The position numbers and the translations under genes were made by a program. A stretch of 64,000 nucleotides of DNA from Anaeramoeba ignava BMAN (taxonomy: Eukaryota > Protista > Anaeramoebae), in NCBI GenBank assembly GCA_028826165.1, contig JAPDFW010000097.1, positions 1 through 64,000 on the forward strand, read 5' to 3'. The notes under the pieces are model-generated. The model ran no database searches. It was given only the letters and a program-made list of their open reading frames with translations, and was not told where the DNA came from. Shown in pieces: positions 18,160-61,695 of the stretch (positions are counted from its first letter, which is position 1; each line of letters begins with the position of its first letter).

Positions 18160-18308
18160 TTTATAAAAATGAAAAAATGGGCCAATTCCATCCTCATTTG
18201 CCACACGAAAAAAATAAAATTTTTTATATAAGAAATTTTTTTTTGTTTTTTAAAAATAATAAAAATTTCTTTTTGAGGATTTTAATTTTGATTTTGATTT
18301 TTATTTAT

Positions 18309-20579
18309 TTAAATCCTCTTTTCAACAAAATTATGAAAAGGAAATGATTCCCAAAAAAAAATCTCACGGAATTTTAAGGAGATTGTATTTAGGATTGCTC
18401 TCAAATTTGGGTCTTCTTTCCCTTTTTCTTCTAACTTATTCTTAAGAAATTGAATTTGTTGATACAACCTTCTTATTCTAAAATGGATTGTTTGAACTTC
18501 TTCTCTTTCTAGAAGAAATGCAAGCATATATCGAGTTTTTCTTCCATGTTTTTTTTGAATAAAATTAACAATTTGAGGGCATTCCCATCTTAAAAAGCAT
18601 CTCAAAAATCCAAATAAACATATGAAAGGTCCACAATCGTTGCTATTTTTTTGTAACTCTTTTTGCTTCCATTTAATAACCTTCAATTTTGCCTTCAATA
18701 ATGAATTAAGCTGATTTATTCCTCTAGAGTATATTTGATGTGGTTTACTATTAAAGATCTCCAATTCATTCTTATTTCGATGAAAAACTGCTAGAATCCA
18801 GTGATGTTGATAAAATAAGGGAATAATCCATTCATTTTTTATTGCAAGAAGCTCACTATTTTGGATTATTTGAGATCTAATCATTTCCAAATTTCCTGAA
18901 TCAAAAATAAAAAGATGTTGGGGTCGTTTGTAGCAGTAAAGAATTTGAAAAAAATTATCAATATCAGAAGTGGAAAACCAATTTTTAGTTGGGATCCAAG
19001 ATAAAATTCGATCTCTCCAAGTTGTAAATCTTCCAGGATCTAGACTTTCATTAATTCTCAGTGTTTCAATAATTTGATCTATGTTTTCCAGATTGTAAAT
19101 AAGATCCAAATTTTGTTGCATATTTTGTTGTTTACCTATCTCTTCTTGTATATTTCGTTCATTCTTTTCTGATTCCTTTTTTTCTTTCTCTGTTTGTTTT
19201 GACTTATGTTTTGACTTATGTTTTGATTTATGTTTAGATTTATGTTTTGACTTATGTTTTGATTTATGTTTAGATTTATGTTTAGATTTATGTTTTGATT
19301 TATCTTTAGATTTATGTTTTGATTTATGTTTAGATTTATGTTTAGATTTATGTTTTGATTTATCTTTAGATTTATCTTTAGATTTATCTTTAGATTTATG
19401 TTTTTGTTTATCCTTTTTTTTTGAAATAGGTTCTGAATTTGAATTATTTCTATCACAACTTGCTTTTTTCTCATCATTTTGAATAATATTAATTTTCTTT
19501 TCCTCATTTAACTTTCCTTTTTTTGTTGTTTTCCTTCTTTTTCTTTGTTGTTTATTCTCCATTTTGCTTTTGTTTTTTTCTTCCTCTTTTTTTAGCTTCT
19601 CTTCTTTTTGTGCACGTTTTATTTCTTTGATTACTTTTTTGTTTTCTTGTTTTTTTTCATATATCTTTGTTTCTTTTTCATTTCTAGTTGTTTTTCTCAA
19701 AGTACGTCCTTTTGCTGACAAATTATAAAGTGCAGCACAAACCAAAATGACTGCTTTATGTAAATGAAGATTGAGCCGCACTTTTTCTCTCAGAATTCTT
19801 TTCACCTTTAATATGGAGAAAACATTTTCTATAATAGATCTTTCTTTATTAATCAAATCATTTCTATCCTTTTGTTCTTTTGTAAAACCTTTTTTTCTTT
19901 TTTTGAATGGAGTGATAGAATATGAATGATGGAATGCCTTATCTCCTAAGACTTTATAAGGTTTTAATTTTTTATCCAAATCACATGCATAAACAGCAGG
20001 AGAATCATGCATAGATCCCTCAAAACCAACTGCAAAAAAAATTATGACTCCTTTTCGATCACAAACAACTATTGCTTTCATACAGCTTGTTCCTCTCTTC
20101 ATACTATACCAAGCTTTTTCATCTTTCAAAATTCTGCTTCGAGGAAAATCAGTCCCGTCAATTACACCAATAACAGAAGGAAGACCTACTTGATTCCATT
20201 CCGCTTCCAATCTTATAAGTTCTTCTCTTGGAGGAAATTGAATCTGGTTTTCCAGAATAGTTTTTAATTGTGTTAACACTTCTTCAATATATCTCTTCAC
20301 TGTTGTTGTCCCAATACGCCAAATCACTGCTAAAAAAGAATAAGAACAATAATGTTTTATCCAAGTTAATAGGATTAATAAACGATTGGGAAGATCCACT
20401 AATTTCTCGTTTCGAGAAGGACTATTAGGAGGACTTGAATTTTGCTTATTTGGAAATGCAGTTTGAATACCATTAATAAGAAATTCAATTGTTTGTCTTT
20501 TTTCTCCAGTAAAACTGAGCAAACTTTTTGGATCGTTTTTGATTTCTTCCCAAACATCTCTGTAAAGTAGATTTTTCAC
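18309..20579 (-). CDS. DDE transposase (HTH_Tnp_4 + DDE_Tnp_4) fused to a C-terminal Ulp1/SENP (C48) cysteine protease
   Basis: HTH: RLLILLTWIKHYCSYSFLAVIWRIGTTTVKRYI. DDE: VIDGT, GSMHD, LGDKAF, RSIIENVFSILK. Protease: WFSTSDID, IIPLFYQHHWILAV, IFNS, QKNSNDCGPF. The listed start is GTG; the frame stays open upstream to ~20699. Confidence 0.92.
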   Translation of the reverse strand: MKNLLYRDVWEEIKNDPKSLLSFTGEKRQTIEFLINGIQTAFPNKQNSSPPNSPSRNEKLVDLPNRLLILLTWIKHYCSYSFLAVIWRIGTTTVKRYIEEVLTQLKTILENQIQFPPREELIRLEAEWNQVGLPSVIGVIDGTDFPRSRILKDEKAWYSMKRGTSCMKAIVVCDRKGVIIFFAVGFEGSMHDSPAVYACDLDKKLKPYKVLGDKAFHHSYSITPFKKRKKGFTKEQKDRNDLINKERSIIENVFSILKVKRILREKVRLNLHLHKAVILVCAALYNLSAKGRTLRKTTRNEKETKIYEKKQENKKVIKEIKRAQKEEKLKKEEEKNKSKMENKQQRKRRKTTKKGKLNEEKKINIIQNDEKKASCDRNNSNSEPISKKKDKQKHKSKDKSKDKSKDKSKHKSKHKSKHKSKHKSKDKSKHKSKHKSKHKSKHKSKHKSKHKSKHKSKHKSKQTEKEKKESEKNERNIQEEIGKQQNMQQNLDLIYNLENIDQIIETLRINESLDPGRFTTWRDRILSWIPTKNWFSTSDIDNFFQILYCYKRPQHLFIFDSGNLEMIRSQIIQNSELLAIKNEWIIPLFYQHHWILAVFHRNKNELEIFNSKPHQIYSRGINQLNSLLKAKLKVIKWKQKELQKNSNDCGPFICLFGFLRCFLRWECPQIVNFIQKKHGRKTRYMLAFLLEREEVQTIHFRIRRLYQQIQFLKNKLEEKGKEDPNLRAILNTISLKFREIFFWESFPFHNFVEKRI

Positions 20580-20824
20580 AATTTGAGACTGAAATTGTGA
20601 ATTCTGACTTGAAGATTGTGAAGAAATTGGAGAATTGGAATTTTGAGATGAAATGATTTTTGATTTATTGAGTGTGTCTTTTGATAAAGAAAAAATCTAT
20701 AGACTTCAATCATTTCTTGGATTAGTTCATCATAAGTGAGCGTGTTTTTGAGCTGCTTTAATTGATCTACAGTGTTTTTACTCACTTTAATTGTGGTATT
20801 TTTTGATTTAGAATTGTTATTCAT
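20576..20824 (-). CDS. Ribbon-helix-helix-like DNA-binding module; probably the true N-terminus of the transposase (joined by a -1 shift at a T6 run near 20692-20697)
   Basis: TTIKVSKNTVDQLKQLKNTLTYDELIQEMIE has the beta-alpha-alpha pattern of CopG/VapB-type RHH proteins. Confidence 0.6.
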   Translation of the reverse strand: MNNNSKSKNTTIKVSKNTVDQLKQLKNTLTYDELIQEMIEVYRFFLYQKTHSINQKSFHLKIPILQFLHNLQVRIHNFSLKL

Positions 20825-21187
20825 TTGTGTTGAGTTGAAAAAAATATTTAGAAATGAAAATAAAAAGAAAAAAATGAAATTGGATTGTTTATTTTTGGAT
20901 TAAAAAAAAAATTTTAGTTAAACATTCACTATTTCAATCTTAACTGGGTATACCTAAGTGTCGAAAATTTTCTTTGAGTATAATTTGAGTATTGGAATCG
21001 TTTTATTTTAAATAAATGAGGAGTTGAAATTTTGAAATTTTCCTTAGGAATCTCCCCAATGAAAAAAATGAAAAAAATGAAAAAATTATTTTGAAAAGAA
21101 ATTTTATTGAGAATTTATTATTTAAGAAAAAAAAAAATTATTTTCATCTAAATTTCGAAATTTCTTTTTTTGAAATTGATTTTCTAG

Positions 21188-34680: not shown

Positions 34681-35910
34681 GACAACAAAGAAAAAACAAA
34701 GAAAAGAATGAAAATTGAGTTTTCTTGATTTAAAAAAAAATTAAAAAAAAAAAAAATTTTAATTAATTAAAATAAAAAAAAAATTAATTATTTTATAAGA
34801 TCATTGTTATGCCCACAAGAATTTTGACTTTAGATAAAATTAAATTGAAAATTTTATAATAAGATCACAATTAATTTATTTTTTATTTTTTCATTTTAAT
34901 TTTGCTTTTTTATTTTGGTTTTATTTTTCTTACTTTTATATAGTTATAATAAATAAAATTTGTTTTATTAAATGATTATTTTTTATTTACTCTTTTAGAT
35001 GCAATACTTTTTTTATTTTTGGAGGGATTTTTTTCAACTCAAAAAAAATGGCAAAACAGAAACAAATTTTAAATCTATTTCCAAAAAAAAAAATCAATTC
35101 AAAAAAATTATTCGCTTTTGAAATCAAAACTAAAATAAAATTAATTCAAAAATCTTTATTTATCAAAAATAAGACAAAGAACAACTCTCAATTATAACAA
35201 TCAAATTGATCATCAAACAAAAAAGTTTTGCCAACAATTTTTTTAATTCAAATTTTAATTAAAGATGTTAAATTTCAATTAAAATGATGACGAAAGCATT
35301 TTCTTTCTTTTATAAAGAATTTTGATTTAAATAAGAATCATAAAAATGTTATCTATTTATTTTATAGTAAAATAATTCCTTTGTTTGGATCGAATTTTGT
35401 TTAACCATTTAATATTTAAGAATGAAAACAAAATTGAAAATATTTAAAAAAGGAATTCTTATTTATTTTTTTTCCATTCGCCTTTTTTTGTTTTTTTATT
35501 TAAAATTTTTTTTCTTTTCCTTTTATCTTTTTTAGAGTAATAAATGAATAGGTATTAAATTTAAAAAATGAGCGATCAAAAGTAATATAAGAAAAAATTA
35601 TGAAGAGAAAATTTATAAAAGAGAATTTTTTTTTGATAATTTATTTGAGAGAAAATTTTAATTGAATTTTTTTTTTATAATAAGGAAAATGGAGAAAAAA
35701 AAAATTATTCTTCTTTTTAATTTTTTTTTAATTAAATTTCTTTTTTAATTTTTTGACACATTTAATTTTGGATTTTTTATTTTTAATTTTTTTTTTTTAA
35801 TTGGAAAAAAAATTTATTTTTTCTTTCTTTTGATCAATTTTTTTTTTTCTTCATTAAATAATTTAAATTGAAAAAAAAAGAAGTTTTAAAGAGAAGAAGA
35901 AGAAGAAAAA

Positions 35911-36784
35911 ATGCAAGAAAACGAAACAAAACAAAGAAAAGGAAAAGAAACAAAAATAATTGAAAAAAATAATAAAGAAAAAGTTGAAAAAATTGAAAAA
36001 ACGAAAACACAATTCAAACATGCAAAATTTATAAGAATATCAGGAATAGTATTAGGGATATATTACATATTAGCCATAGGGGTATCAAGATATATAACAA
36101 GAGGACCTGATAGTTTTTATGATAATTGGTGGGTTTGTAATGCAGGAATGATTCTTGGAGTTATTGGTATGCTTACATTAAAATTGCAAATGGTTGGTGG
36201 AGCTTGTTTGCTTATTTTCTTTCCAAGTATATTTTGGTGTATTGATGTTGTTAGTTATTTAGTTGCTGGAAAATTACCACTTGGTTCTGCTAGTTATATG
36301 TTTAAAGATGATACACCATTTCTTGAAATTGCATCAACTACTCATCATCTTTGGTATCTTCCTTTTGCTTTGTTTATTATTTCTCTTGAAACTAGAATCA
36401 ATATTAATAGTTGGTTGATCTCAAATGTTTTTGTTACTTTTATTGTTGTTGGTGCTCGTATTTTTACTCCTAAATACACTCTTCTTCCTGATGGAAGAAA
36501 TTTCCTTTTGAATATTAATATGGCTTATAATTTTTGGGGTAAAACAAATCTATTTTTATTTCAAAAAAAATTTATCCGATTTCAAAAAATTTATCCGATT
36601 TTAAATTAAATTATTTCTAAATTATTTAGATGATTGTCCAATTAAATTTATGCATTATTTTGATGATTGGCATCCTGTTGTTTATCTAACTTACATGAAT
36701 TTTATTGGTTATTTTGGTTTTCATTTAGTCGCTTTTATAATTTGTCGTACGATTTCAAGATTAATTTCAAGATCAAAAAAATAA
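35911..36784 (+). CDS. Polytopic membrane protein of unknown function, copy 1
   Basis: About 7 hydrophobic helices with WWVCN and STTHHLWYLP motifs; intron 36539-36629. Confidence 0.8.
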
Positions 36785-37154: not shown

Positions 37155-37205
37155 TTCCGTTATAAAAATTAATAAATAATTTTAAAAGAAGAAGAAGAAG
37201 AAAAA

Positions 37206-38059
37206 ATGCAAGAAAACGAAACAAAACAAAGAAAAGGAAAAGAAACAAAAATAATTGAAAAAAATAATAAAGAAAAAGTTGAAAAAATTGAAAAAACGAA
37301 AACACAATTCAAACATGCGAAATTTATAAGAATATCAGGAATAGTATTAGGAATATATTACATATTAGCCATAGGGGTATCAAGATATATAACAAGAGGA
37401 CCTGATAGTATTTATGATAATTGGTGGGTTTGTAATGCAGGAATGGTTCTTGGAGTTATTGGTATGCTTACATTAAAATTGCAAATGGTTGGTGGAGCTT
37501 GTTTGCTTATTTTCTTTCCAAGTATATTTTGGTGTATTGATGTTGTTAGTTATTTAGTTGCTAGAAAATTACCACTTGGTTCTGCTAGTTATATGTTTAA
37601 AGATGATACACCATTTCTTGAAATTGCATCAACTACTCATCATCTTTGGTATCTTCCTTTTGCTTTGTTTATTATTTCTCTTGAAACTAGAATCAATATT
37701 AATAGTTGGTTGATCTCAAATGGTGTCTTGACTTTTATTGTTGTTGGTGCTCGTATTTTTACTCCTAAATACACTCTTCTTCCTGATGGAAGAAATTTCC
37801 TTTTGAATGTTAATATGGCTTATAATTTTTGGGGTAAAACAAATCTATTTTTATTTCAAAATTAAAATTAAAATTAAATTAAAAATTAAATTAAAATTAT
37901 TTAGATGATTGTCCAATTAAATTTATGCATTATTTTGATGATTGGCATCCTGTTGTTTATCTAACTTACATGAATTTTATTGGTTATTTTGGTTTTCATT
38001 TAGGCGCTTTTATAATTTGCCATCCAATTTCAAGATTAATTTCAAGATCAAAAAAATAA
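37206..38059 (+). CDS. Polytopic membrane protein of unknown function, copy 2 (tandem duplicate)
   Basis: Near-identical to copy 1 with the same intron position; an upstream ~120-bp block is also duplicated (35590-35710 vs 36983-37110). Confidence 0.8.
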
Positions 38060-46556: not shown

Positions 46557-49500
46557 ATGAATTTCCAAGTTTTTCTTTTTCTTTTTTTTCTTCTTTTTCT
46601 TTTTAATTTAAAAATTATTCTTTCTTCTTGTCCATTTTTATCAAAAACTTATCCAGATTCAGGAACAGAACAAATTGCAGGATTTACATTTGAATTAATT
46701 GTTGAATTTAGTGAAACAATATCAATTCAAAATGAAATGGAAGAAAAAATTCCTTTAAGAAATTTAAGTGATGTTGATTTATCTTATTGGTTTTTTACAA
46801 ATAGTAGAACATATGCTTACACAACATTATATCCTATTTTTCTTTTAAATACTCAATCAAATCAAGTGATTTCTCCAGTTACTGTAAATCAAATTGATAC
46901 AATAGGAGATTCATTTCAAGTTACTTTTCCAATTCTTAATGATAATCAAGAGTAATTAATTTTTTTTTTCCTTTTCTTTTTGATCAATTTAATCAAATTT
47001 TTTTTTATAAATTTTAATTTTGGATTTAATTTTGGATTTAATTTTGGATTTAAAATTGATTTAAAATTGATTTAATTTTGGATTTAAAATTGATTTTATT
47101 TTGGATTTAAAATTAATTTAAAATTGATATAAAATTAATTTAAAATTGATTTAAAATTGATATAAAATTGATATAAAATTGATATAAAATTGATTTAAAA
47201 TTGATTTAAAATTGATTTAAAATTGATTTAAAATTGATATAAAATTGATTTAAAATTGATTTAAAATTGATATAAAATTGATATAAAATTGATTTAAAAT
47301 TGATTTAATTTTGGATTTAAAATTGATATAAAATTGATTTAAAATTGATATAAAATTGATTTAAAATTGATTTAAAATTGATATAAAATTGATTTAAAAT
47401 TGATTTAAAATTGATATAAAATTGATTTAAAATTGATATAAAATTGATTTAAAATTAATATAAAATTGATTTAAAATTGATATAAAATTGATTTAAAATT
47501 GATTTAAAATTGATTTAAAATTGATTTAAAATTGATTTAAAATTGATATAAAATTGATTTAAAATTGATTTAAAATTGATATAAAATTGATTTAAAATTG
47601 ATTTAAAATTGATTTAATTTAAAATTGATTTAAAATTGATTTAAAATTGATTTAAAATTGATTAAAAATTGATTTAAAATTGATTTAAAATTGATTTAAA
47701 ATTGATTTAAAATTGATTTAAAATTGATTTAAAATTGATTTAAAATTGATTTAAAATTGATATAAAATTGATTTAAAATTGATATAAAATTGATTTAAAA
47801 TTGATTTAAAATTGATTTAAAATTGATTTAATTTTGGATTTAAAATTGATTTAATTTTGGATTTAAAATTGATTTTAGTACTTTGGTTCTCTACGTATTG
47901 GATAACCTCTTCTTTAGTGAAAATTATCCACAAAATTCTGTTCAATTTCAGGCCAAATCTTGGTTTTATACAGGAACAAATCCAACAAAACCATGTGAAA
48001 ATTTTACAGTTTTAAATCCAATTAAAGAATTCTGCTCAAATTCATCAACTGAACATTATTCACCAGAATCTCAAATAGTTTGGGAACAACAAATATCAAA
48101 CTTCACTCTGAATTTCCCAACTATTTCTTCATGTACACAATTTGATAAAATATCTTGTATGTATAAACTCATGCTCAGAATATATGTTTCCAATCCAGGA
48201 AATTATTCTAATCTTTCTTTGAAAAATATTTCAATCACATATCAAGACATACAATACAAAATCAGCAGTGATTTAAGCATAAACATCTTAAAAAAAGATA
48301 CATTGGCAAAAATTCCAATTCAATCATTCAATGAATCAATTCATAATTCCAAAGAAACCTATATAGCAGGCCCAGATCCTATTTATTTCGTAGAAAGAAA
48401 GACCCAATGGGCTAACCAACAAGAATTCATCACATATTTTGAAAAATGGAAAAGAGGAGAATTAGTGCTTAGTTCAGATCCAAATTTAAACGGTTCTGAA
48501 ACTCTGGAAATGATCGAAAATTTAGATCAATTTATTTGTAGTTTTTTTGATCTCAATGTTTCAACCACTGAATCAATCATAGATTTTCATTGGAATAAAT
48601 CAAGTTATATCTGGCAAAAACAAACTATTGAGTCAAGTGGTTTTGTATGCGATTCATGTAGTTTTCGTGATTATAATTCATTCTACGCAGATTGGACAAG
48701 ACACATTCTCGAAATTGATCAAGATAATCCTTGGAGAATTTTTCGATTCAATACGCTTAGCCAAATGAACCAAGAAATTCAAATAGATAACGGTATCTCT
48801 GTGTTTCTTTTCGAGAACACTAATCAAAGTATTGTTGATATTCTTAATATATCAAAAGAAAGAGCTGACAATTCTTATTTATCGGAAAATTCAACAAGTG
48901 AAATTAAAATCAACTTTGGATTCGATACTTTTGATAAATTATTCTCATCAAGCGAACAAAATTATGTTCTTTTAGTCCCTGATCTTCCAGAAGTTTTGAC
49001 AGAAAACGGTCCACTTTCACCACAAATCACAACAAATATAACAGGATTCGAAAATTGGCTCACAGTTTTGAACACTTTAATTGGTTCTGAATGTGGATTG
49101 CTTGGAATAAGTTACGAATCTTTTTATAACCAAGAAACTAAATGTGAGGTTCCTTATGGAACTTGTGTTGAACAGCAAATAGAAGATTTGCAAAAAAACG
49201 AACTTGGAAAACTTGGTGATTTTCTTCCTTTATTTTCTTCAAGACTTAATGCTACCTTGAAATCTTCTTTTTCTGATCTTGATTCAATTCGAGATCGAAT
49301 CTCAATTGACAACTCAACTTATAATCTTCTTCTCGAATATTCCCAACAAGAAATTCTTAACATGGATCTTTATCTCAATCTTGATTTGATCTCTTTCCAT
49401 CAGCCATTTATTGTTCTTTCTGACCATGAATGGGATGTGCTAAGCGAAGAAGAGAAGCAACAAGCCATTTGCTCTCAAATTGATTTCCAACCAAATTCAA

Positions 49501-51443
49501 CTGTATTCAACGAAGACAAAGGAAGACTCTTTGTGAGCACTTCTAATGGAGGAACAGAGCCTGGAGACTTCTCTGTTTCTGTTTCTTGTGAGTTCGAATA
49601 CGATCCCCATTTTAATCAGATTTCTGGTCTTTTGCCAAGCCAAAGTGTTGAATTTGAATTTGATCTTGAAATCCAGAACCAAACATGGAATTTAACATCC
49701 CAAATCAACAAATCTTGCGTAGTTTCTTTCAATTCAAACAAGAAACTGTTGTGGGATACAAAAGGGAAAAATTTTGCCTGCATCAAAAATTTGACACTTT
49801 TTTTTGGACGGTTTATTCCAGCTTGTGAACTTGAGAGAAACGAAACATATGTGAAACAAAACATCCCAGAAATGCCGTATTTGCTGTTGAATTCTCAAGG
49901 CAATATCAACGTCTCATTTGGATTTGAAAGAAATGAGAGGAATATTGGAGAGCTTGAAGTGATGATAACAAACACAGGAGTTGTTTCAGGAAAATTTGAA
50001 GTGAAAATGGTCTGTGAAAATACATCCTCAATTTCTCCAAAACTAGAATCACAAGAAATTGAAGTGGGATCTTTATCTTCTTCAAACACAACAATCGAAA
50101 TGAAATTTGATGATTTCCCACAAGAAGTGATTTTTTTAGACAATGTTTATTATTCATATTCCTGCAATCTGTCTATTGAAGCTTTAACACCAGCTCGTGA
50201 GTGTTGGAGTTCATTGAACAAATCAGCCGCAGATTCAGTTGTTTTTATAGTTCAAAATGGACTATTTATGAATGATGTTGTGATTGAAAATCAATGGAAT
50301 AACTCAAATACTTCAGTTTCAATCACAAGTTCTCCAGCAAACTCCAAGTTCTTTCTGTTTCTTTCCAAAGTTTATGGATGGAATAACAAATGGGTTCTTC
50401 TTTTGTTCTTTTTTCTGTCCATTTTATCTGTTCCTTTTGTGATTTTTCTTATCATATTTTGTGTTAAAAAAGCAAAAAGAGAAGTTAAAGATTTATCAAT
50501 TACTTTAAGTGATTGGATTCAAATCCAAAATTTAAATAAGACAATCCAAGAAAAGAAAAAATCCAAAACACAGAAAAAACAAACAAACTCATTTCTCTGG
50601 ATTGGAGAAAATGAAATACACGAGGAAACATTGATTAACTTAAGAAATCGAAAGAAAAAAAAAGTGGATCAAAATTCGCTTGATGAAGTTACATTTAATT
50701 ATCATAAAAAAAAATCAAAAGAAGATCAACAAGAACAAGAAGAAGAATCAGTTAGAATTCTTCATAATTTTTGGATAGGCTTGGGTTACAAATCGTTTGT
50801 TTTTCTTGATAATCCAGAAATATGGAAAAAATGTGTTGTTCATGGTGATCTTTTTTTACCTGAAAAAAATTCATTTGAAAATTCAAATCAAATTACAGTT
50901 GAGTTCGAAGGTTTTGATGATGTTGAAGTAGAAATTGATTGGGATAATAATCCCCAAGATGATTCTGATGTGATTGTGAAACTAGTCAGAAAGGAATTTG
51001 TTCAAGATTCTTTAGAAAATGTAAAGAAACTCAAAATCATCCGTTATTTTCTTTTAACTCCTTCTAAATTATATCATCAATTTTGGGATGTTTTTATTCA
51101 TAATGTTAAAAAAAATGTATCTGATGATATTATCTCTCAATTTACTTTTGGCAAAACTGGATATTCTTTTTCTCAAGAAGACAATTTACTAAATGAAAAA
51201 AATCCTATTCAAAAAAATTCAATTTTTGATTTTGATTCCAATTCAAATCCAAATCAAATTAGTGATTTTTCTACAAGTGAAATTTCTGATGAAGATTATT
51301 TGGATTCTGATGATCTTTTTTTGGATAATCAAAGATCCTTTTCTCTTTTGGAAAACTCAAATGATAAAAGTTTTAATCAAGATTTTGGAAAAGAAAATTT
51401 TGAAATGAGTGATTCTTTAGAAATTGAATATGAAGAAAAATAA
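46557..51443 (+). CDS. Divergent HAP2/GCS1-like (fusexin, class II fusogen) type I membrane protein, 1319 aa
   Basis: Signal peptide; in-frame intron 46952-47878; HAP2-GCS1 signature ECGLLGISYESFYNQETKCEVPYGTCVEQQIEDL (49089-49190); two domain-III-like Ig motifs; one TM helix (~50391-50465); long acidic cytoplasmic tail. Confidence 0.78.
46952..47878 (+). repeat. 927-bp intron filled with an 11-bp (AAAATTGATTT/ATA)n repeat
   Basis: GT...TAG boundaries join NDNQD|TLVLYV in frame. Confidence 0.88.
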
Positions 51444-51531
51444 TAATAACAATGAAAATGATTTTTAAATTTAATTTTTTTTTCATTTTTTTTCATTTTT
51501 TTCATTTTAAAATTAAAAAAAGAAAAAGAAA

Positions 51532-53703
51532 ATGGGAATTATTTTTGCACTTTTAAGAGATTACTTTTATCCTTTCTTAGTTTTCCTTTTAATGTTGATG
51601 ACTTTTTTAATACCTCCAGCAATAAAACCAAAACAAAAAGATTTTGATGAGATGAATATGCATTATCCAGAAAATTCAAGTACAGGAAGTTTAGATAACA
51701 CAATTGATAGACTTTTTTGGTTTGTTCAAATTTCTGATCTTCATTTAAATAAATTCAAAGAAAATTTTGGATCACAATTTGAAAGAGTTTGTACAAATTA
51801 TATTGGTTCAATAAATCCAAAATTTGTGATTGTAACAGGAGATATAACAGATTCAAAGGAAAATGGAAAATATCCACAAAGAAGTAAACATTATATTGAA
51901 GAATGGGAAAAATATCAAGAAATTTTGAATAATTGTGGTGTTAATAATTCTTCTTTTTGGTTTGATATTAGAGGAAATCATGATAATGCAGCTGTTTTGA
52001 AAAAATATGCATCAGATAATTATTTTTATGATTACTCTCCACAATCTCCTTTTCTTAATTCATTAGATAGACCTTCTATGTATAGTTTTGTTCATCAAGA
52101 ACCATATGGAAATTATCAATTTGTTGGAATGGATCTTGGTACTTATCCACTTATTTCTGGACCTTTGGATTTCTTTATGTTTATTGATAAAGATAAATTA
52201 GATGAATTGGAAGAAAATTTTGAATTCAATAAAAACAATTATGATATTAATCAAACTATTGTTTTTACTCATTCACCTTTAACAACAGTTCAACGCCCTT
52301 TAACAAAATCTTCATCAGGAAAAAATCTTGATAAGATTCTTAAGGATAATCGAGTATTAAGTGTTATTGATGGTCATTTTCATAGTAAAGAAATGTATTC
52401 ACGTTTATTTTCGAAAAAAGATACAATTTTTGATTTACAAGTAAATGATGTTAAATCAGATGGAGCAATTAGAATATTTGCAATTGATAATGATTTATTT
52501 TCTTTTACAGATACAGATACAACTGATAAAGATGATCCTATAATTGTAATTACAAATCCAAAAGATAGTAGATTTATAAGTCAAAAAGAACCACTTTACA
52601 AAATCAAACAATCAACTTTTATCCGAGTTTTAATTTTCCATTCATCAACATTTGATCCATTAAGAATATCAACAGTTAGTTGTGATATTGATGGAGAAAC
52701 AATATCTTATTCAATGACAAGAGTTAATCCAACTGAACCACTTTGGGTTGCAGCATGGAATCCAAATGATTATTCTGATGGAATTCATGAAATTACAATC
52801 ACAATCAAAGATCTTGGTGGAAATGAAGTTATTACTCAAACACAAGATTTTTCAGTTGATAAAACACCTTCTTTTATTGGATATAATTTCTTTGAAATTG
52901 TTCAAAGACACAATCTCTATAGTTTTATGGTTGGATGGGATGTTGTTCTTATTTTTATTTATGTTATTCAATTTGGAACACTTCCAAAAATTATCAAGAA
53001 AATTATGAAAAGAACACCAACAAAATTTGAAATGTTTTCAGAACAATTTGAAGATAAAACAACTAAAATTACATTTTTATCATTTTTTGGATATACTTAT
53101 AAATCAATGATTTGGAAATTTTCAATGATTCCAACATTTAAATGGATATTAATTTGTACTGTTGGATGGCTTTTTGTTTTTGGACCTAATTTCGCAGATT
53201 TTGCTGATGGAAAATGGGGAGCATCTTTTATGTTTGGAGTTGCTTTTGATGGTTCAAAACATCTTTGTTCGATGTTATTTTGGTATGCAATGATTGGTTT
53301 TGGAGGAATTTTCTTACCAACTTTAATTATGATTTCACTTCCTGTAATTGAACCACCAAGATCAAGTAATTACAAATTAAGATTATTAATTCATCCTGAA
53401 ACTTTAATAGCTTTAACTGGAGTGATTGGATTTCTTGAATATTTTTCTTATAATCTTTTCACTGGTTATAAAGGATCTTCTTTAATTCTTAGTTTTGGAT
53501 TATGGTGGCCTACTATGATTTGTTTTGCTCTTATTGTTACAACCATTATTCAAGATTATAGAAAGATTATCAAACTTAAAAGAGAAGAACAATCTGGAGA
53601 TTCTGAGAATAGTTATCTTAATAATGATATTGAAAAAGTGCAATCAAATCCAAATTCTGATTCAAATTTGGAAGGTTCAGATTCTACAAAAGATTTACTT
53701 TAA
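51532..53703 (+). CDS. TMEM62-like calcineurin-like metallophosphoesterase membrane protein, copy 1
   Basis: QISDLH, GDITD, DIRGNHD, GHFH; N-terminal anchor, Ig-like middle region, C-terminal TM helices. Confidence 0.9.
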   Translation: MGIIFALLRDYFYPFLVFLLMLMTFLIPPAIKPKQKDFDEMNMHYPENSSTGSLDNTIDRLFWFVQISDLHLNKFKENFGSQFERVCTNYIGSINPKFVIVTGDITDSKENGKYPQRSKHYIEEWEKYQEILNNCGVNNSSFWFDIRGNHDNAAVLKKYASDNYFYDYSPQSPFLNSLDRPSMYSFVHQEPYGNYQFVGMDLGTYPLISGPLDFFMFIDKDKLDELEENFEFNKNNYDINQTIVFTHSPLTTVQRPLTKSSSGKNLDKILKDNRVLSVIDGHFHSKEMYSRLFSKKDTIFDLQVNDVKSDGAIRIFAIDNDLFSFTDTDTTDKDDPIIVITNPKDSRFISQKEPLYKIKQSTFIRVLIFHSSTFDPLRISTVSCDIDGETISYSMTRVNPTEPLWVAAWNPNDYSDGIHEITITIKDLGGNEVITQTQDFSVDKTPSFIGYNFFEIVQRHNLYSFMVGWDVVLIFIYVIQFGTLPKIIKKIMKRTPTKFEMFSEQFEDKTTKITFLSFFGYTYKSMIWKFSMIPTFKWILICTVGWLFVFGPNFADFADGKWGASFMFGVAFDGSKHLCSMLFWYAMIGFGGIFLPTLIMISLPVIEPPRSSNYKLRLLIHPETLIALTGVIGFLEYFSYNLFTGYKGSSLILSFGLWWPTMICFALIVTTIIQDYRKIIKLKREEQSGDSENSYLNNDIEKVQSNPNSDSNLEGSDSTKDLL

Positions 53704-56245: not shown

Positions 56246-56519
56246 ATTATTGGAACTTAATAATTTTACAATCTAAATTTATTAAATTCTTTCAAAATTT
56301 TTTTTTGCTTTTTTTTATTTTGATCAATTTTATTGTTTATTTTTTAACAATAAAAAAAAAAGAGATAAAAAAGAAAATTAAGAAAAATTGATTTATTGAA
56401 GCTTTTTTTATTTTGAAAAGGTAAACAAAAAAAAAACAATAAAAAAAAATTGTTCCAAAAAAAACTTAATAAACAAAATTCATTTTTTTCCATTTTAAAA
56501 TTAAAAAAAGAAAAAGAAA

Positions 56520-58691
56520 ATGGGAATTATTTTTGCACTTTTAAGAGATTACTTTTATCCTTTCTTAGTTTTCCTTTTAATGTTGATGACTTTTTTAATA
56601 CCTCCAGCAATAAAACCAAAACAAAAAGATTTTGATGAGATGAATATGCATTATCCAGAAAATTCAAGTACAGGAAGTTTAGATAATACAATTGATAGAC
56701 TTTTTTGGTTTGTTCAAATTTCTGATCTTCATTTAAATAAATTCAAAGAAAATTTTGGATCACAATTTGAAAGAGTTTGTACAAATTATATTGGCTCAAT
56801 AAATCCAAAATTTGTGATTCTATCAGGAGATATAACAGATGCGAGAGAAAGCGACGATTATCCAGTGAGGAATAAACAGAATATTGAAGAATGGGAAAAA
56901 TATCAAGAAATTTTGAATAATTGTGGTGTTAATAATTCTTCTTTTTGGTTTGATATTAGAGGAAATCATGATAATGCAGCTGTTTTGAAAAAATATGCAT
57001 CAGATAATTATTTTTATGATTACTCTCCACAATCTCCTTTTCTTAATTCATTAGATAGACCTTCTATGTATAGTTTTGTTCATCAAGAACCATATGGAAG
57101 TTATCAATTTGTTGGAATGGATCTTGGTACTTATCCACTTATTTCTGGACCTTTGGGCTTCTTTATGTTTGTTGATAAAGATAAATTAGATGAATTGGAA
57201 GAAAATTTTGAATTCAATAAAAACAATTATGATATTAATCAAACTATTGTTTTTACTCATTCACCTTTAACAACAGTTCAACGCCCTTTAACAAAATCTT
57301 CATCAGGAAAAAATCTTGATAAGATTCTTAAGGATAATCGAGTATTAAGTGTTCTTGATGGTCATTTTCATAACAAAGAAATGTATTCACGTTTATTTTC
57401 GAAAAAAGATACAATTTTTGATTTACAAGTAAATGATGTTAAATCAGATGGAGCAATTAGAATATTTGCAATTGATAATGATTTATTTTCTTTTACAGAT
57501 ACAGATACAACTGATAAAGATGATCCTATAATTGTAATCACAAATCCAAAAGATAGTAGATTTATAAGTCAAAAAGAACCACTTTACAAAATCAAACAAT
57601 CAACCTTTATTCGAGTTTTAATTTTCCATTCATCAACATTTGATCCATTAAGAATATCAACAGTTAGTTGTGATATTGATGGAGAAACAATATCTTATTC
57701 AATGACAAGAGTTAATCCAACTGAACCACTTTGGGTTGCAGCATGGAATCCAAATGATTATTCTGATGGAGTTCATGAAATTACAATCACAATCAAAGAT
57801 CTTGGTGGAAATGAAGTTATTACCCAAACACAAGATTTTTCAGTTGATAAAACACCTTCTTTTATTGGATATAATTTCTTTGAAATTGTTCAAAGACACA
57901 ATCTCTATAGTTTTATGGTTGGATGGGATGTTGTTCTTATTTTTATTTATGTTATTCAATTTGGAACACTTCCAAAAATAATCAAGAAAATTATGAAAAG
58001 AACACCAACAAAATTTGAAATGTTTTCAGAACAATTTGAAGATAAAACAACTAAAATTACATTTTTATCATTTTTTGGATATACTTATAAATCAATGATT
58101 TGGAAATTTTCAATGATTCCAACATTTAAATGGATATTAATTTGTACTGTTGGATGGCTTTTTGTTTTTGGACCTAATTTTGCAGAATTCACAGATGGAA
58201 AATGGGGAGCATCTTTTATGTTTGGAGTTGCTTTTGATGGTTCAAAACATCTTTATTCCACAATGTTTTGGTATGCAATGGTTGGTTTTGGAGGAATTTT
58301 CTTACCAACTTTAATTATGATTTCACTTCCTGTAATTGAACCACCAAGATCAAGTAATTACAAATTAAGATTATTAATTCATCCTGAAACTTTAATAGCT
58401 TTAACTGGAGTGATTGGATTTCTTGAATATTTTTCTTATGATCTTTGGTCTGGTTATAAAGGATCTTCTTTAATTCTTAGTTTTGGATTATGGTGGCCTA
58501 CTATGATTTGTTTTGCTCTTATTGTTACAACCATTATTCAAGATTATAGAAAGATTATCAAACTTAAAAGAGAAGAACAATCTGGTGATTCTGAGAATAG
58601 TTATATTAATAATGATATTGAAAAAGGACAATCAAATCCAAATTCACAGAATTCTGTCCAATATGCTGATTTGACAAAAGATTTGAATTAA
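56520..58691 (+). CDS. TMEM62-like metallophosphoesterase, copy 2 (tandem duplicate)
   Basis: Same length (723 aa) and motifs as copy 1. Confidence 0.9.
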   Translation: MGIIFALLRDYFYPFLVFLLMLMTFLIPPAIKPKQKDFDEMNMHYPENSSTGSLDNTIDRLFWFVQISDLHLNKFKENFGSQFERVCTNYIGSINPKFVILSGDITDARESDDYPVRNKQNIEEWEKYQEILNNCGVNNSSFWFDIRGNHDNAAVLKKYASDNYFYDYSPQSPFLNSLDRPSMYSFVHQEPYGSYQFVGMDLGTYPLISGPLGFFMFVDKDKLDELEENFEFNKNNYDINQTIVFTHSPLTTVQRPLTKSSSGKNLDKILKDNRVLSVLDGHFHNKEMYSRLFSKKDTIFDLQVNDVKSDGAIRIFAIDNDLFSFTDTDTTDKDDPIIVITNPKDSRFISQKEPLYKIKQSTFIRVLIFHSSTFDPLRISTVSCDIDGETISYSMTRVNPTEPLWVAAWNPNDYSDGVHEITITIKDLGGNEVITQTQDFSVDKTPSFIGYNFFEIVQRHNLYSFMVGWDVVLIFIYVIQFGTLPKIIKKIMKRTPTKFEMFSEQFEDKTTKITFLSFFGYTYKSMIWKFSMIPTFKWILICTVGWLFVFGPNFAEFTDGKWGASFMFGVAFDGSKHLYSTMFWYAMVGFGGIFLPTLIMISLPVIEPPRSSNYKLRLLIHPETLIALTGVIGFLEYFSYDLWSGYKGSSLILSFGLWWPTMICFALIVTTIIQDYRKIIKLKREEQSGDSENSYINNDIEKGQSNPNSQNSVQYADLTKDLN

Positions 58692-59491
58692 AATCAATTC
58701 ATTCCACTTTTTTTTCTTTTCTTTTCTTTTCTTTTCTCAATGAGAAGAATAACAAAAAAAGATTTTTGAAGAGAATAAAAACAGAGATTAAATTAAAAAA
58801 ATTATTTTATAAATCAAAATATTAAATTAAAATATTAAATTAAATTATTAAATTAAATTATTATTTGCTTTAATTTAAATAAAGAAAGGCAAAATTATTA
58901 AATTAAAAATATTAAATTGAAAATATTAATTATTATTTGCTTTAATTTAATTTAATTTAATTAAAATAAATTAAAATATTAAATCAAAATATTAAATTTA
59001 ATTAAAATATTAAATCAAATTATTATTTGCTTTAATTTAATTTAATTAAATAAAGGAAGGCAAAATTATTAAATTAAAATATTAAATTAAAATATTAAAT
59101 TGAAAATTATTTGCTTTAATTTAATTAATTAAATAAAATAAGGCAAAAATATTAAATTAAAATATTAAATCAAAATATTAAATTAATTAATTATTTGCTT
59201 TAATTTAATTTAATTAAAGAAGGCAAAATTATTAAATTAAATATTAAATCAAAGAAGGCAAAATTATTAAATTTAAATATTAAATTAAAATATTAAATTA
59301 AAATATTAAATTAATTAATTATTTGCTTTAATTTAATTTAATTAAATAAATTTAAACAGCTGGCATTTTTTTTTTGTTGTTTTTTTTTTTTGCTTTTTTT
59401 TGCTTTTTTTTTTTGCTCTTCTTTTAAATTAAAATAATTTTTTTTTTTTCATTTTTTTCCTTTCAAAAAAACAAAACAAAACAATAAAAAA

Positions 59492-60463
59492 ATGAAAGCA
59501 GTAGTTGTAAAAGAATACGGAGATAAAGAAAAACTTCTTATTGAACAAAAAGAAATTCCAAAACCAGTTTCAGGTCAAATTTTAGTAAAGAATTTAGTTT
59601 TCGGAATTAATTTTATGGATCTTTTTCAAAGAAAAGGGATTTGGAAACCACCACTTCCATTTACACCAGGAGCAGAAGCAGCAGGAATAGTTGAAGCAGT
59701 ACCAGAAGATTACAAAGAAGAAGAATTCAAAGTTGGAACAAGAGTGGCATATTTTGCAATGGCAGCACAATCATATGCAGAATACTCACTTATCCCAATT
59801 ACATCATTAGTAGCAATTCCTGAGAAAATTTCCTTTGAAGATGCCTGCGCAGTTTCAGTTCAAGGATTAACAGCTCATTATCTTTGCCATTCAAGTTATG
59901 CAGTGAAAAAGGGGGATACAGTTCTTATTATGGCAGGAAGTGGAGGAGTTGGAGGTTTGCTAGTTCAAATGTGTCATATGATTGGAGCAACTGTAATAAC
60001 AACAGTTTCATCAGAAGAGAAAATGAAAATTGCTAAAGAATTTGGTGCTGATCATGTTATTAATTATACTGTTTCTGATTTCAAAGAAGAAGTTCGCAAA
60101 ATTTTCCCTAATGGTGTTGATGCTGTTTTTGATGGTGTTGGAAAAGCTGTTTTTGATAAAGCTCTTGAATGTCTTAGAATGAGAGGAAACTATGTTGTTT
60201 TTGGATATGCTTCTGGTCAAGTTGAAAACTTTGATATAATGAGATTGGGATCTTTAGGTTCTCTTAATTTGACTGTTTGTGTTTTGTTCCATTTTATTTC
60301 CCCTCCTGAAGTTTATAAGAAGAGAATGACTGATTGTTTGAATTGGGTTCAAGAAGGCAAAATTAAACCTAAAATTACTGTTGTTCCTTTTGAGAAAGTT
60401 GCAGATGCTCATGATTTGGTGGAAAGTAGAAAATCAACAGGAAAAGTTATCGTCAAATTTTAA
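59492..60463 (+). CDS. NADPH:quinone oxidoreductase (Qor/zeta-crystallin, MDR family), copy 1
   Basis: GINFMD, PFTPGAEAAG, QGLTAHYL, AGSGGVG, GADHVINY, ESRKSTGKVI; intronless. Confidence 0.93.
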   Translation: MKAVVVKEYGDKEKLLIEQKEIPKPVSGQILVKNLVFGINFMDLFQRKGIWKPPLPFTPGAEAAGIVEAVPEDYKEEEFKVGTRVAYFAMAAQSYAEYSLIPITSLVAIPEKISFEDACAVSVQGLTAHYLCHSSYAVKKGDTVLIMAGSGGVGGLLVQMCHMIGATVITTVSSEEKMKIAKEFGADHVINYTVSDFKEEVRKIFPNGVDAVFDGVGKAVFDKALECLRMRGNYVVFGYASGQVENFDIMRLGSLGSLNLTVCVLFHFISPPEVYKKRMTDCLNWVQEGKIKPKITVVPFEKVADAHDLVESRKSTGKVIVKF

Positions 60464-60723
60464 TTCTTTTCTCAAAACAAAACAAAACAAAACAAAACAA
60501 AACAAACTTAATTTCTTTTTTCTTAATTTCTTAATTTCTTTTTATCGAACGATCAATTAAAAGTTTAATTTAAAAGAAAAGAAAAACTTTTTTTTGCTTT
60601 TTTTTATTATTTTTAAAACAAAAAAAAAGGAAAAGCAAATAATTTTTTGCTTTTCTTTTAAATTAAAATAATTTTTTTTTTTCATTTTTTTCCTTTCAAA
60701 AAACAAAACAAAACAATAAAAAA

Positions 60724-61695
60724 ATGAAAGCAGTAGTTGTAAAAGAATACGGAGATAAAGAAAAACTTCTTATTGAACAAAAAGAAATTCCAAAACCAGT
60801 TTCAGGTCAAATTTTAGTAAAGAATTTAGTTTCAGGAATTAATTTGATGGATATTTTTCTAAGAAAAGGATTTATGAATCCACCACTTCCATTTACACCA
60901 GGATCAGAAGCAGCAGGAATAGTTGAAGCAGTACCAGAAGATTACAAAGAAGAAAAATTTAAAGTTGGAACAAAAGTTGTTTATGCTTCAATGACATCAC
61001 AAACATATGCAGAATACTCACTTGTTCCAATTGATTTTTTAGTAGCAATTCCTGAGAAAATTTCCTTTGAAGATGCCTGCGCAATTCCAGTTCAAGGATT
61101 AACAGCTCATTATCTTTGCCATTCAAGTTATGCAGTGAAAAAGGGGGATACAGTTCTTATTATGGCAGGAAGTGGAGGAGTTGGAGGTTTATTAGTTCAA
61201 ATGTGTCATATGATTGGAGCAACTGTAATAACAACAGTTTCATCAGAAGAGAAAATGAAAATTGCTAAAGAATTTGGTGCTGATCATGTTATTAATTATA
61301 CTGTTTCTGATTTCAAAGAAGAAGTTCGCAAAATTTTCCCTAATGGTGTTGATGCTGTTTTTGATTCTGTTGGAAAAGCTGTTTTTGATAAAGCTCTTGA
61401 ATGTCTTAGAATGAGAGGATATTATGTTGTTTTTGGATATGCTTCTGGTCAAGTTGAAAACTTTGATATAATGAGATTGGGATCTTTAGGTTCTCTTAAT
61501 TTGACTGTTTGCATGTTTACTGACTTTGTTAATTCTCCTCAAATTTATCAACAAAAAATGGCTGATTGTTTGAATTGGGTTCAAGAAGGTAAAATTAAAC
61601 CTAAAGTTACTACTTTCCCTTTGGAAAAAGTTGCAGATGCTCATGAATTTATGGAAAGTAGAAAATCAACAGGAAAAATTCTTCTTAAATTTTAA
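60724..61695 (+). CDS. NADPH:quinone oxidoreductase, copy 2 (tandem duplicate)
   Basis: Same length and motifs as copy 1; the 5' flank is also duplicated. Confidence 0.93.
   Translation: MKAVVVKEYGDKEKLLIEQKEIPKPVSGQILVKNLVSGINLMDIFLRKGFMNPPLPFTPGSEAAGIVEAVPEDYKEEKFKVGTKVVYASMTSQTYAEYSLVPIDFLVAIPEKISFEDACAIPVQGLTAHYLCHSSYAVKKGDTVLIMAGSGGVGGLLVQMCHMIGATVITTVSSEEKMKIAKEFGADHVINYTVSDFKEEVRKIFPNGVDAVFDSVGKAVFDKALECLRMRGYYVVFGYASGQVENFDIMRLGSLGSLNLTVCMFTDFVNSPQIYQQKMADCLNWVQEGKIKPKVTTFPLEKVADAHEFMESRKSTGKILLKF

Follow-up and report, generated by a model that had tools for sequence, protein, structure and literature searches.

Ubiquitin-like modifier (Ubl) proteases recur on DNA transposons: Ginger1 transposases have Ulp1 or OTU domains, Mutator elements Ulp1 and Helitrons OTU (PMC2836005), and Ulp1-like proteases (ULP) are found in CACTA elements (PMC2528002). 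The passage of PMC2836005 that draws on Gladyshev and Arkhipova 2009 also gives a Trichomonas vaginalis protein, XP_001314237.1, in which an IS5-like transposase (pfam01609) is fused to a C19 protease. Deubiquitinases borne by Helitrons are active in vitro and have been proposed to shield transposition proteins from the proteasome (PMC9741609). The purpose of Ulp1, OTU and USP domains on DNA transposons has been a standing question since the plant Mutator-like element (MULE) and Ginger papers, and we came across no test in the literature of a C48 protease fused to a transposase. Here we describe a transposon, family A, in a 64,000-nucleotide stretch of the Anaeramoeba ignava BMAN genome (contig JAPDFW010000097.1, positions 1 to 64,000; hereafter the window). 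It encodes in one chain an IS5-like transposase of the PHIS kind and a C48 protease, and unrelated transposon groups in the same genome appear, from sequence comparison, to trade such proteases.

In the window, which is AT-rich eukaryotic sequence, the element has a P4-type ATPase gene on one side and a region rich in repeats on the other. Its features, in window coordinates, are as follows; TIR denotes a terminal inverted repeat.

18176 to 18178: target-site duplication, second copy.
18179 to 21057, minus strand: whole transposon (family A), 2879 bp, delimited by its ends and by the second copy on contig C35.
18179 to 18189, minus strand: 3' imperfect TIR.
18195 to 18202, minus strand: subterminal GGCAAATG motif, 14 nt before the terminal CC, common to families A, C and D.
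18311 to 18309, minus strand: stop codon.
18309 to 18494, minus strand: C-terminal helical hairpin ending in an aromatic-W motif, in common with pogo-borne proteases.
18495 to 19025, minus strand: CE-clan (C48) protease core, with His at 18803, Asn at 18752, Gln at 18653 and Cys at 18635.
19100 to 19700, minus strand: charged linker with KHKS/KDKS repeats at about 19415 to 19197, unequal in number in the two copies.
19722 to 20162, minus strand: DDE_Tnp_4 catalytic domain (E 1e-25), with D at 20159, D at 19943 and E at 19829.
20259 to 20405, minus strand: HTH_Tnp_4 helix-turn-helix (28.8 bits, cut-off 27).
20679 to 20682, minus strand: run of four A (five in the C35 copy), a 1-nt deletion that puts the ATG at 20823 out of frame in the window copy.
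20695 to 20823, minus strand: ATG and short N-terminal module, possibly ribbon-helix-helix-like.
21047 to 21057, minus strand: 5' imperfect TIR, matching the 3' end at 8 of 11 positions.
21058 to 21060: target-site duplication, first copy, AAT on the plus strand (ATT in the orientation of the element).

A genome search recovered a second full copy (G000:C35:574107-576950) that starts and ends at the same bases within unrelated flanks. Relative to the window copy it has a single substitution, two deletions in the repeat tract that keep the frame, and an additional A. Both copies are bounded by ATT on either side, the same duplication at two loci, and removing the element plus one ATT in silico restores a continuous CATTTTTT microsatellite at the window site. 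The two copies record a recent transposition, which duplicated 3 bp of target (ATT/AAT). The terminal sequences (GGGGAGATTCC and GGAATTGGCCC) agree at 8 of 11 bases, which is weak alone, so that the ends of family A rest on the C35 copy with its identical termini. An earlier note, made by a model from the sequence, had described imperfect TIRs and an AAT duplication and suggested a genome-wide search for copies with the same ends and different flanks; the one further full copy confirms what it described. The remaining DNA matches to the element, many in number, consist solely of the KHKS-type repeat. A match at C8:1-2000 (L077) was rejected as a third insertion: it carries the window's own flanks, is about 70% identical, and has many deletions. 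It is a low-quality assembly duplicate of the window locus, from a contig start at which the assembly is unpolished. Several transposon loci of this genome (L055, L056, L058, L060, L061) are embedded in long tandem repeats of AT-rich sequence, a setting that hints at elements which either prefer satellite-like DNA or survive better there.

The long frame of the window copy runs from 20696 to 18312 on the minus strand and is open for 795 codons. The C35 copy encodes a single 826-aa chain from an ATG equivalent to window position 20823, in which a short N-terminal module is followed by HTH_Tnp_4, DDE_Tnp_4, a charged K-rich linker, and the C48 protease. The helix-turn-helix, catalytic triad, linker and protease that the earlier note placed in one frame are thus all present, with Pfam matches and with the triad and protease residues where it had put them. 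In the window copy the A4 run severs the first ~50 codons, so that the first in-frame ATG, at 20102, lies beyond the first catalytic Asp; the run is either a mutation or a long-read homopolymer or assembly error. We rejected programmed -1 frameshifting at 20680, since the N-terminus is in frame in the C35 copy and in three sister families (B, C and D, below). The N-terminal module falls just short of DUF7557 (24.9 bits, cut-off 25), with a weak match in three of four families, and its monomer model has two helices and no fold match. Going by the genomic open reading frame (ORF), the transposase and protease would lie on one transcript. A EukProt transcript of a pogo-type family with a C48 protease (P0153) encodes a protein of 476 aa, which breaks off inside the K-rich linker and does not reach the protease; an assembly slip may account for this, or the transcript may come from another copy or be an isoform with the transposase alone.

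The transposase has an IS5-like DDE domain with the PHIS signature D-K-D-D-P-R-E, at spacings of 19, 30, 20, 10, 22 and 3. Two of these deviate, by one each, from the published ranges of 19-29, 29, 18-40, 11-19, 18-28 and 3 (PMC4122938). The 11-bp imperfect TIR and the ATT at two loci likewise agree with the TIR and 0-3 bp AT-rich duplication of PHIS elements, and an ATT/AAT duplication is also found in families B, C and E and in an element from a Joint Genome Institute (JGI) contig. The "Harbinger/ISL2-type" label of the earlier note was therefore right as to kind, by the DDE signature, and did not hold for either named group. PIF/Harbinger and ISL2EU, with defining features as set out in PMC4482050, share DDE_Tnp_4, HTH_Tnp_4, and GG-starting TIRs with family A. 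Unlike PIF/Harbinger, family A has ATT/AAT in place of a TWA duplication, and a single ORF fills the element, with no match to Myb/SANT. Unlike ISL2EU, its flanks (CATT| and |ATT) form a 3-bp duplication in place of the 2-bp AT duplication in A|AT|T, and neither a THAP domain nor a YqaJ ORF was detected. The GenBank label "THAP domain protein" on sister proteins is unsupported by Pfam, and a THAP-bearing protein (P0138) stands on a separate branch of the transposase tree. Pangu/Harbinger2 (PMC4482050; PMC12730594) resembles family A in its IS5-like DDE domain, ANT duplication, and short TIRs (11-40 bp) beginning GG or AG, but generally comes with two ORFs and with a transposase that has no other recognisable domain, whereas the single ORF of family A includes HTH_Tnp_4 and a protease. 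Bacterial IS5 is another fit for the ANT duplication and the GG/AG ends; the best prokaryotic IS5 model nevertheless gave 47.5 bits against a cut-off of 140 (NF033581), and the transposase is 22-29% identical to plasmid IS5 and does not group with ISMae4. The transposase tree supports families A-D together (100/99) and does not place them among the named groups, as the earlier note had hoped a phylogeny might: its backbone is without resolution and named Pangu, Harbinger, and ISL2PR references are not included. For these reasons we keep to the safe label of an IS5-like, single-ORF PHIS lineage that targets ANT; judged on the features that define those groups, it belongs to neither PIF/Harbinger nor ISL2EU.

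The profile scan suggested in the earlier note matched HTH_Tnp_4 and DDE_Tnp_4 at the scores listed above, with Peptidase_C48 just over its cut-off (20.8 bits against 20.7). Because this last score is marginal, the fold call rests on a predicted structure (pLDDT, the predicted local distance difference test score, 80.6). With this model Foldseek returned SENP5, Ulp1, and NEDP1 at E ~1e-7, and VIA-align returned NEDP1 (Z 16.9, 172 residues, root-mean-square deviation 2.9), SENP5 (Z 16.9), and XopD (16.6). CE-clan enzymes fill almost all of the best 28 VIA-align rows, and the viral protease pS273R gave Z 13.6; a PDB sequence search with the protease gave no matches. The predicted structure settles the domain as a CE-clan fold, and the mismatch to C48 that the earlier note had named as counting against its proposal was not what the comparison gave. 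SUMO, NEDD8, and ubiquitin proteases lie within 1-2 Z units of one another against the model. "SUMO-type", as the protease had been called, is a label of fold, correct in that the domain is SENP/Ulp1-like; substrate specificity cannot be read from a likeness that fits all three kinds of protease about equally.

His, Asn, Gln, and Cys stand in the expected clan CE order. His, Gln, and Cys are invariant across transposon proteases that are merely 21-26% identical, and Asn in the third position is common to most transposon-borne relatives. Asn is also the third residue of the CE-clan-like African swine fever virus (ASFV) protease pS273R (PMC9866604); the relatives and the viral enzyme together make Asn for Asp no argument against activity. 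We propose, from the conserved residues and the model, that the family A protease is an active CE-clan isopeptidase. It resembles SENP8/NEDP1, SENP5, Ulp1, and bacterial CE-clan deconjugases in fold and in the positions of His, Gln, and Cys (Z 15-17), and differs from them in sequence (12-21% identity), in Asn for Asp, and in an extra C-terminal helical hairpin.

Three sister families in the same genome, B (C117), C (C126/C134/C137), and D (C74), have transposases 41-44% identical to that of family A, GG ends, and ATT flanks (imperfect on one side in D), and all end in a second type of C48 that has an insertion of ~100 residues. The nearest kin of the family A protease sit on transposases of pogo type (DDE_1), in elements on C1, C20, C41, and C114 that are flanked by TA duplications: it scores 51-76 bits against pogo proteases, with which it shares the C-terminal hairpin, versus no more than 24 against all others. 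These pogo-C48 elements (G000:C1:784884-787721 and those on C41, C114, and C20; L051-L054, L060, L061) have perfect TIRs and Pfam C48 scores of 30-33 bits. The insert-bearing C48, in turn, is also fused to Kolobok-type transposases (L062-L065, L082, L083, on C89, C75, C69, and C68) with TTAA duplications and AG..CT ends, several copies being frameshifted. A weak PF20700 match would make these carriers Mutator-like; that label was dropped in view of the TTAA duplications and AG..CT ends, which we take to be Kolobok-type features.

The transposase tree puts family A within B-D (100/99 for A-D; 99/89 for A+B+C), while a single clade for the proteases of A, B, C, and D is rejected by the approximately unbiased (AU) test (p 0.004 for the core, 1.4e-7 for the whole domain). 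The B-D proteases group with those of the Kolobok type in both protease trees (support 98/98 and 99/98); for the whole-domain tree, the family C protease, which is in two pieces, and a host SENP8-like gene, with two exons, were each joined with X at the break. At least one exchange between superfamilies (B-D/Kolobok type) is thus well supported by these sequence comparisons, and a second (A/pogo) is likely. Two remoter IS5-like families (E and F), on a different branch of the transposase tree, have a USP/C19 domain at the same C-terminal position, so that different deconjugases fill one slot. Such USP/C19 fusions to IS5-like transposases occur at L056 (C91), L043 (C67), and L057 (C134), and one of the two families has a 16-bp TIR and an AAT duplication. 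GenBank names the C91 protein as a ubiquitin hydrolase alone.

Relatives outside this genome were sought by a profile search of 1.84 billion proteins; the best 150 matches were looked at, so the range that follows is a lower bound. At least three foreign proteins from two other public samples have both domains: P0073 (831 aa, JGI contig), P0018 (676 aa), and P0067 (673 aa), the last two from run SRR25885108. A plain protein homology search gave nothing useful where the profile search saw these relatives, a blank that marks a limit of sensitivity. The P0073 element is 2875 bp long with a 17-bp TIR and an AAT duplication, lies in DNA of 60% GC, and adjoins an F-box/ankyrin gene; its host is quite different from Anaeramoeba and probably an amoeba. 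P0018 and P0073 retain His, Asp, Gln, and Cys. The three foreign proteins form a clade (96/94) near transposases of A. flamelloides, and a two-residue shortening after the first Asp is common to them and families A-D; the transposase tree is without resolution on the two sets as one group. A related A. flamelloides transposase (P0155, L071) is annotated as joined to downstream USP-like Cys and His boxes, a doubtful join that runs across inserted repeats.

We propose that family A is an autonomous cut-and-paste IS5-like (PHIS) transposon that inserts at ANT and encodes a DNA-binding N-terminus, the DDE transposase, a flexible charged linker, and the protease in one protein; cut-and-paste transposition at ANT is as expected of the family. 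Because the protease lies in the same chain (C35 copy), it would travel with the transposase to the element ends, where end-bound transposase would hold it at the transposition complex. There it could strip Ubl marks (SUMO, ubiquitin, or NEDD8) from the transposase and neighbouring proteins, and the complex would thus be spared extraction and degradation by the SUMO-to-ubiquitin-to-proteasome route that clears DNA-stuck proteins. The alternation of two C48 types and USP in the slot makes general removal of Ubl marks near the complex the probable selected function, and, as SUMO and ubiquitin act in series in DNA-protein clearance, either type of enzyme would help. An SP-RING domain and genes resembling SENP and SENP8 are present in the host, and the protection proposed for Helitron-borne deubiquitinases (PMC9741609) is a precedent. 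The protease would be a swappable module: family A most likely acquired its own in an exchange with pogo-type elements resident in this genome, and this would have displaced the insert-bearing C48 that the sister families share with Kolobok-type elements. Taking the sequences and models together, we put the probability that the protease shields the transposition complex from Ubl-based clearance, as a swappable module, at about 0.5.

Several results weigh against this proposal. One IS5-like family and other pogo families are without a protease, so the protease is dispensable, and P0067 (L070), although full length, has lost both the His and the Cys of the C48 domain; that domain may possibly be a pseudo-protease that solely binds the modifier. 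A search for a Uba2 domain was blank, no SUMO gene was singled out among 127 ubiquitin-like matches genome-wide, and SUMO consensus sites are no more frequent than in shuffled sequence. As to the module's origin, a grouping of the A and pogo proteases is not rejected (AU p 0.33) and has no supported node, and the protease trees, with 13 proteases, long branches, and no root, do not give the direction of a swap. Many of the 127 ubiquitin-like matches lie in tandem arrays of diverged units, beyond polyubiquitin genes.

The same enzyme could serve other ends. SUMO-dependent silencing of transposons occurs in animals and fungi, and by removing SUMO from chromatin repressors at the element's DNA the protease might raise expression of the element, as the earlier note suggested. 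The SENP/Ulp1 fold and the host SP-RING domain agree with such a role, but the model gives no indication of SUMO specificity, NEDD8 and ubiquitin proteases fitting it about equally, and a USP occupies the same slot in related families; this makes anti-silencing one option among several, and an unlikely one. Action on repair factors, so that excision and integration gaps are cleanly repaired, was put forward for Ginger1 (PMC2836005). Tethering at DNA breaks would suit it, as would the deneddylase NEDP1 among the closest folds; it overlaps with shielding of the complex, from which sequence does not separate it, and taken as the explanation in its own right we regard it as distinctly unlikely.

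A single chain with a long exposed linker, and viral processing proteases of the same fold (pS273R, Z 13.6), would be consistent with a protease that frees or inactivates the transposase by cutting its own chain in the linker. Gly-Gly is absent, however, from the family A and B proteins and from the two pogo fusions checked, and a USP as replacement would not fill such a role, which leaves self-processing very improbable. Nor is it at all likely that the domain is passive cargo, a captured fragment of a host protease with no part in transposition. Protease-free families do exist alongside, and P0067 is without catalytic residues; yet an in-frame fusion with catalytic residues is kept in four IS5-like families, in pogo and Kolobok-type families, and in the foreign samples, at 20-27% identity. 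Similarity of the family A protease to the host SENP8-like gene is also weak (14 bits).

Beyond shielding in this one element, we tentatively suggest a wider view, which we hold to be possible though well short of probable: family A would belong to an undescribed one-ORF, ANT-targeting PHIS lineage with C48, spread across distant microbial eukaryotes, and in Anaeramoeba at least three unrelated transposase superfamilies (PHIS, pogo, and Kolobok-type) would share an exchangeable pool of ubiquitin/SUMO-removing domains because clearance by ubiquitin and Ubl is the host's main brake on them. The genome is a natural experiment in this respect, with related transposases that carry C48 type I, type II, USP, or none, and the same proteases on unrelated transposases. 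A compact 2.9-kb, single-gene, recently mobile element with an intact copy also makes the purpose of the protease directly testable with a catalytic mutant.

Elsewhere in the window is a gene for a HAP2/GCS1 gamete-fusion protein (47850-51443, plus strand; Pfam E 2e-19), together with three tandem duplicate pairs: metallophosphoesterase/TMEM62-like genes (51517-53703 and 56505-58691), probable quinone oxidoreductases (59438-60463 and 60667-61695), and an unnamed membrane protein (35890-36609 and 37176-37865).

Among known systems, the Trichomonas fusion also joins an IS5-like transposase to a ubiquitin-removing protease in a metamonad, and its domain content is that of families E and F; family A differs from it in having C48 and not C19/USP. 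The claim of the earlier note that the single-chain architecture is new is accordingly narrowed: a C19 fusion to an IS5-like transposase was known (PMC2836005), whereas no description of C48 in a PHIS element was found in the literature searched, which was mostly open papers, with Repbase outside its coverage. Ginger1 (PMC2836005) is like family A in having a DDE transposase and a C-terminal Ubl protease in one chain, with two protease types that alternate, but its transposase is Gypsy-integrase-like, its duplication is a 4-bp CCGG/CCGT, and its superfamily is unrelated. Plant MULE and CACTA elements with ULP (PMC2528002, PMC12903978) show C48 on cut-and-paste transposons with several gains, as here; they belong to other superfamilies, and their ULP, unlike the protease of family A, is often a separate or reverse-oriented gene. 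The TET/JBP genes of rust fungi (PMC12730594) offer a parallel in which an accessory anti-host enzyme moves between superfamilies in one host, a PHIS lineage included; TET/JBP is a separate gene acting on DNA methylation, whereas the family A protease is an in-frame domain. The fusions in Ginger1, MULE, CACTA, and Trichomonas make the theme a known one. What look new are the superfamily that hosts the protease, the ANT-targeting lineage with its single ORF, and an exchange that runs three ways: within the searches made, PHIS is added to the superfamilies that carry C48, and pogo and Kolobok-type elements likewise.

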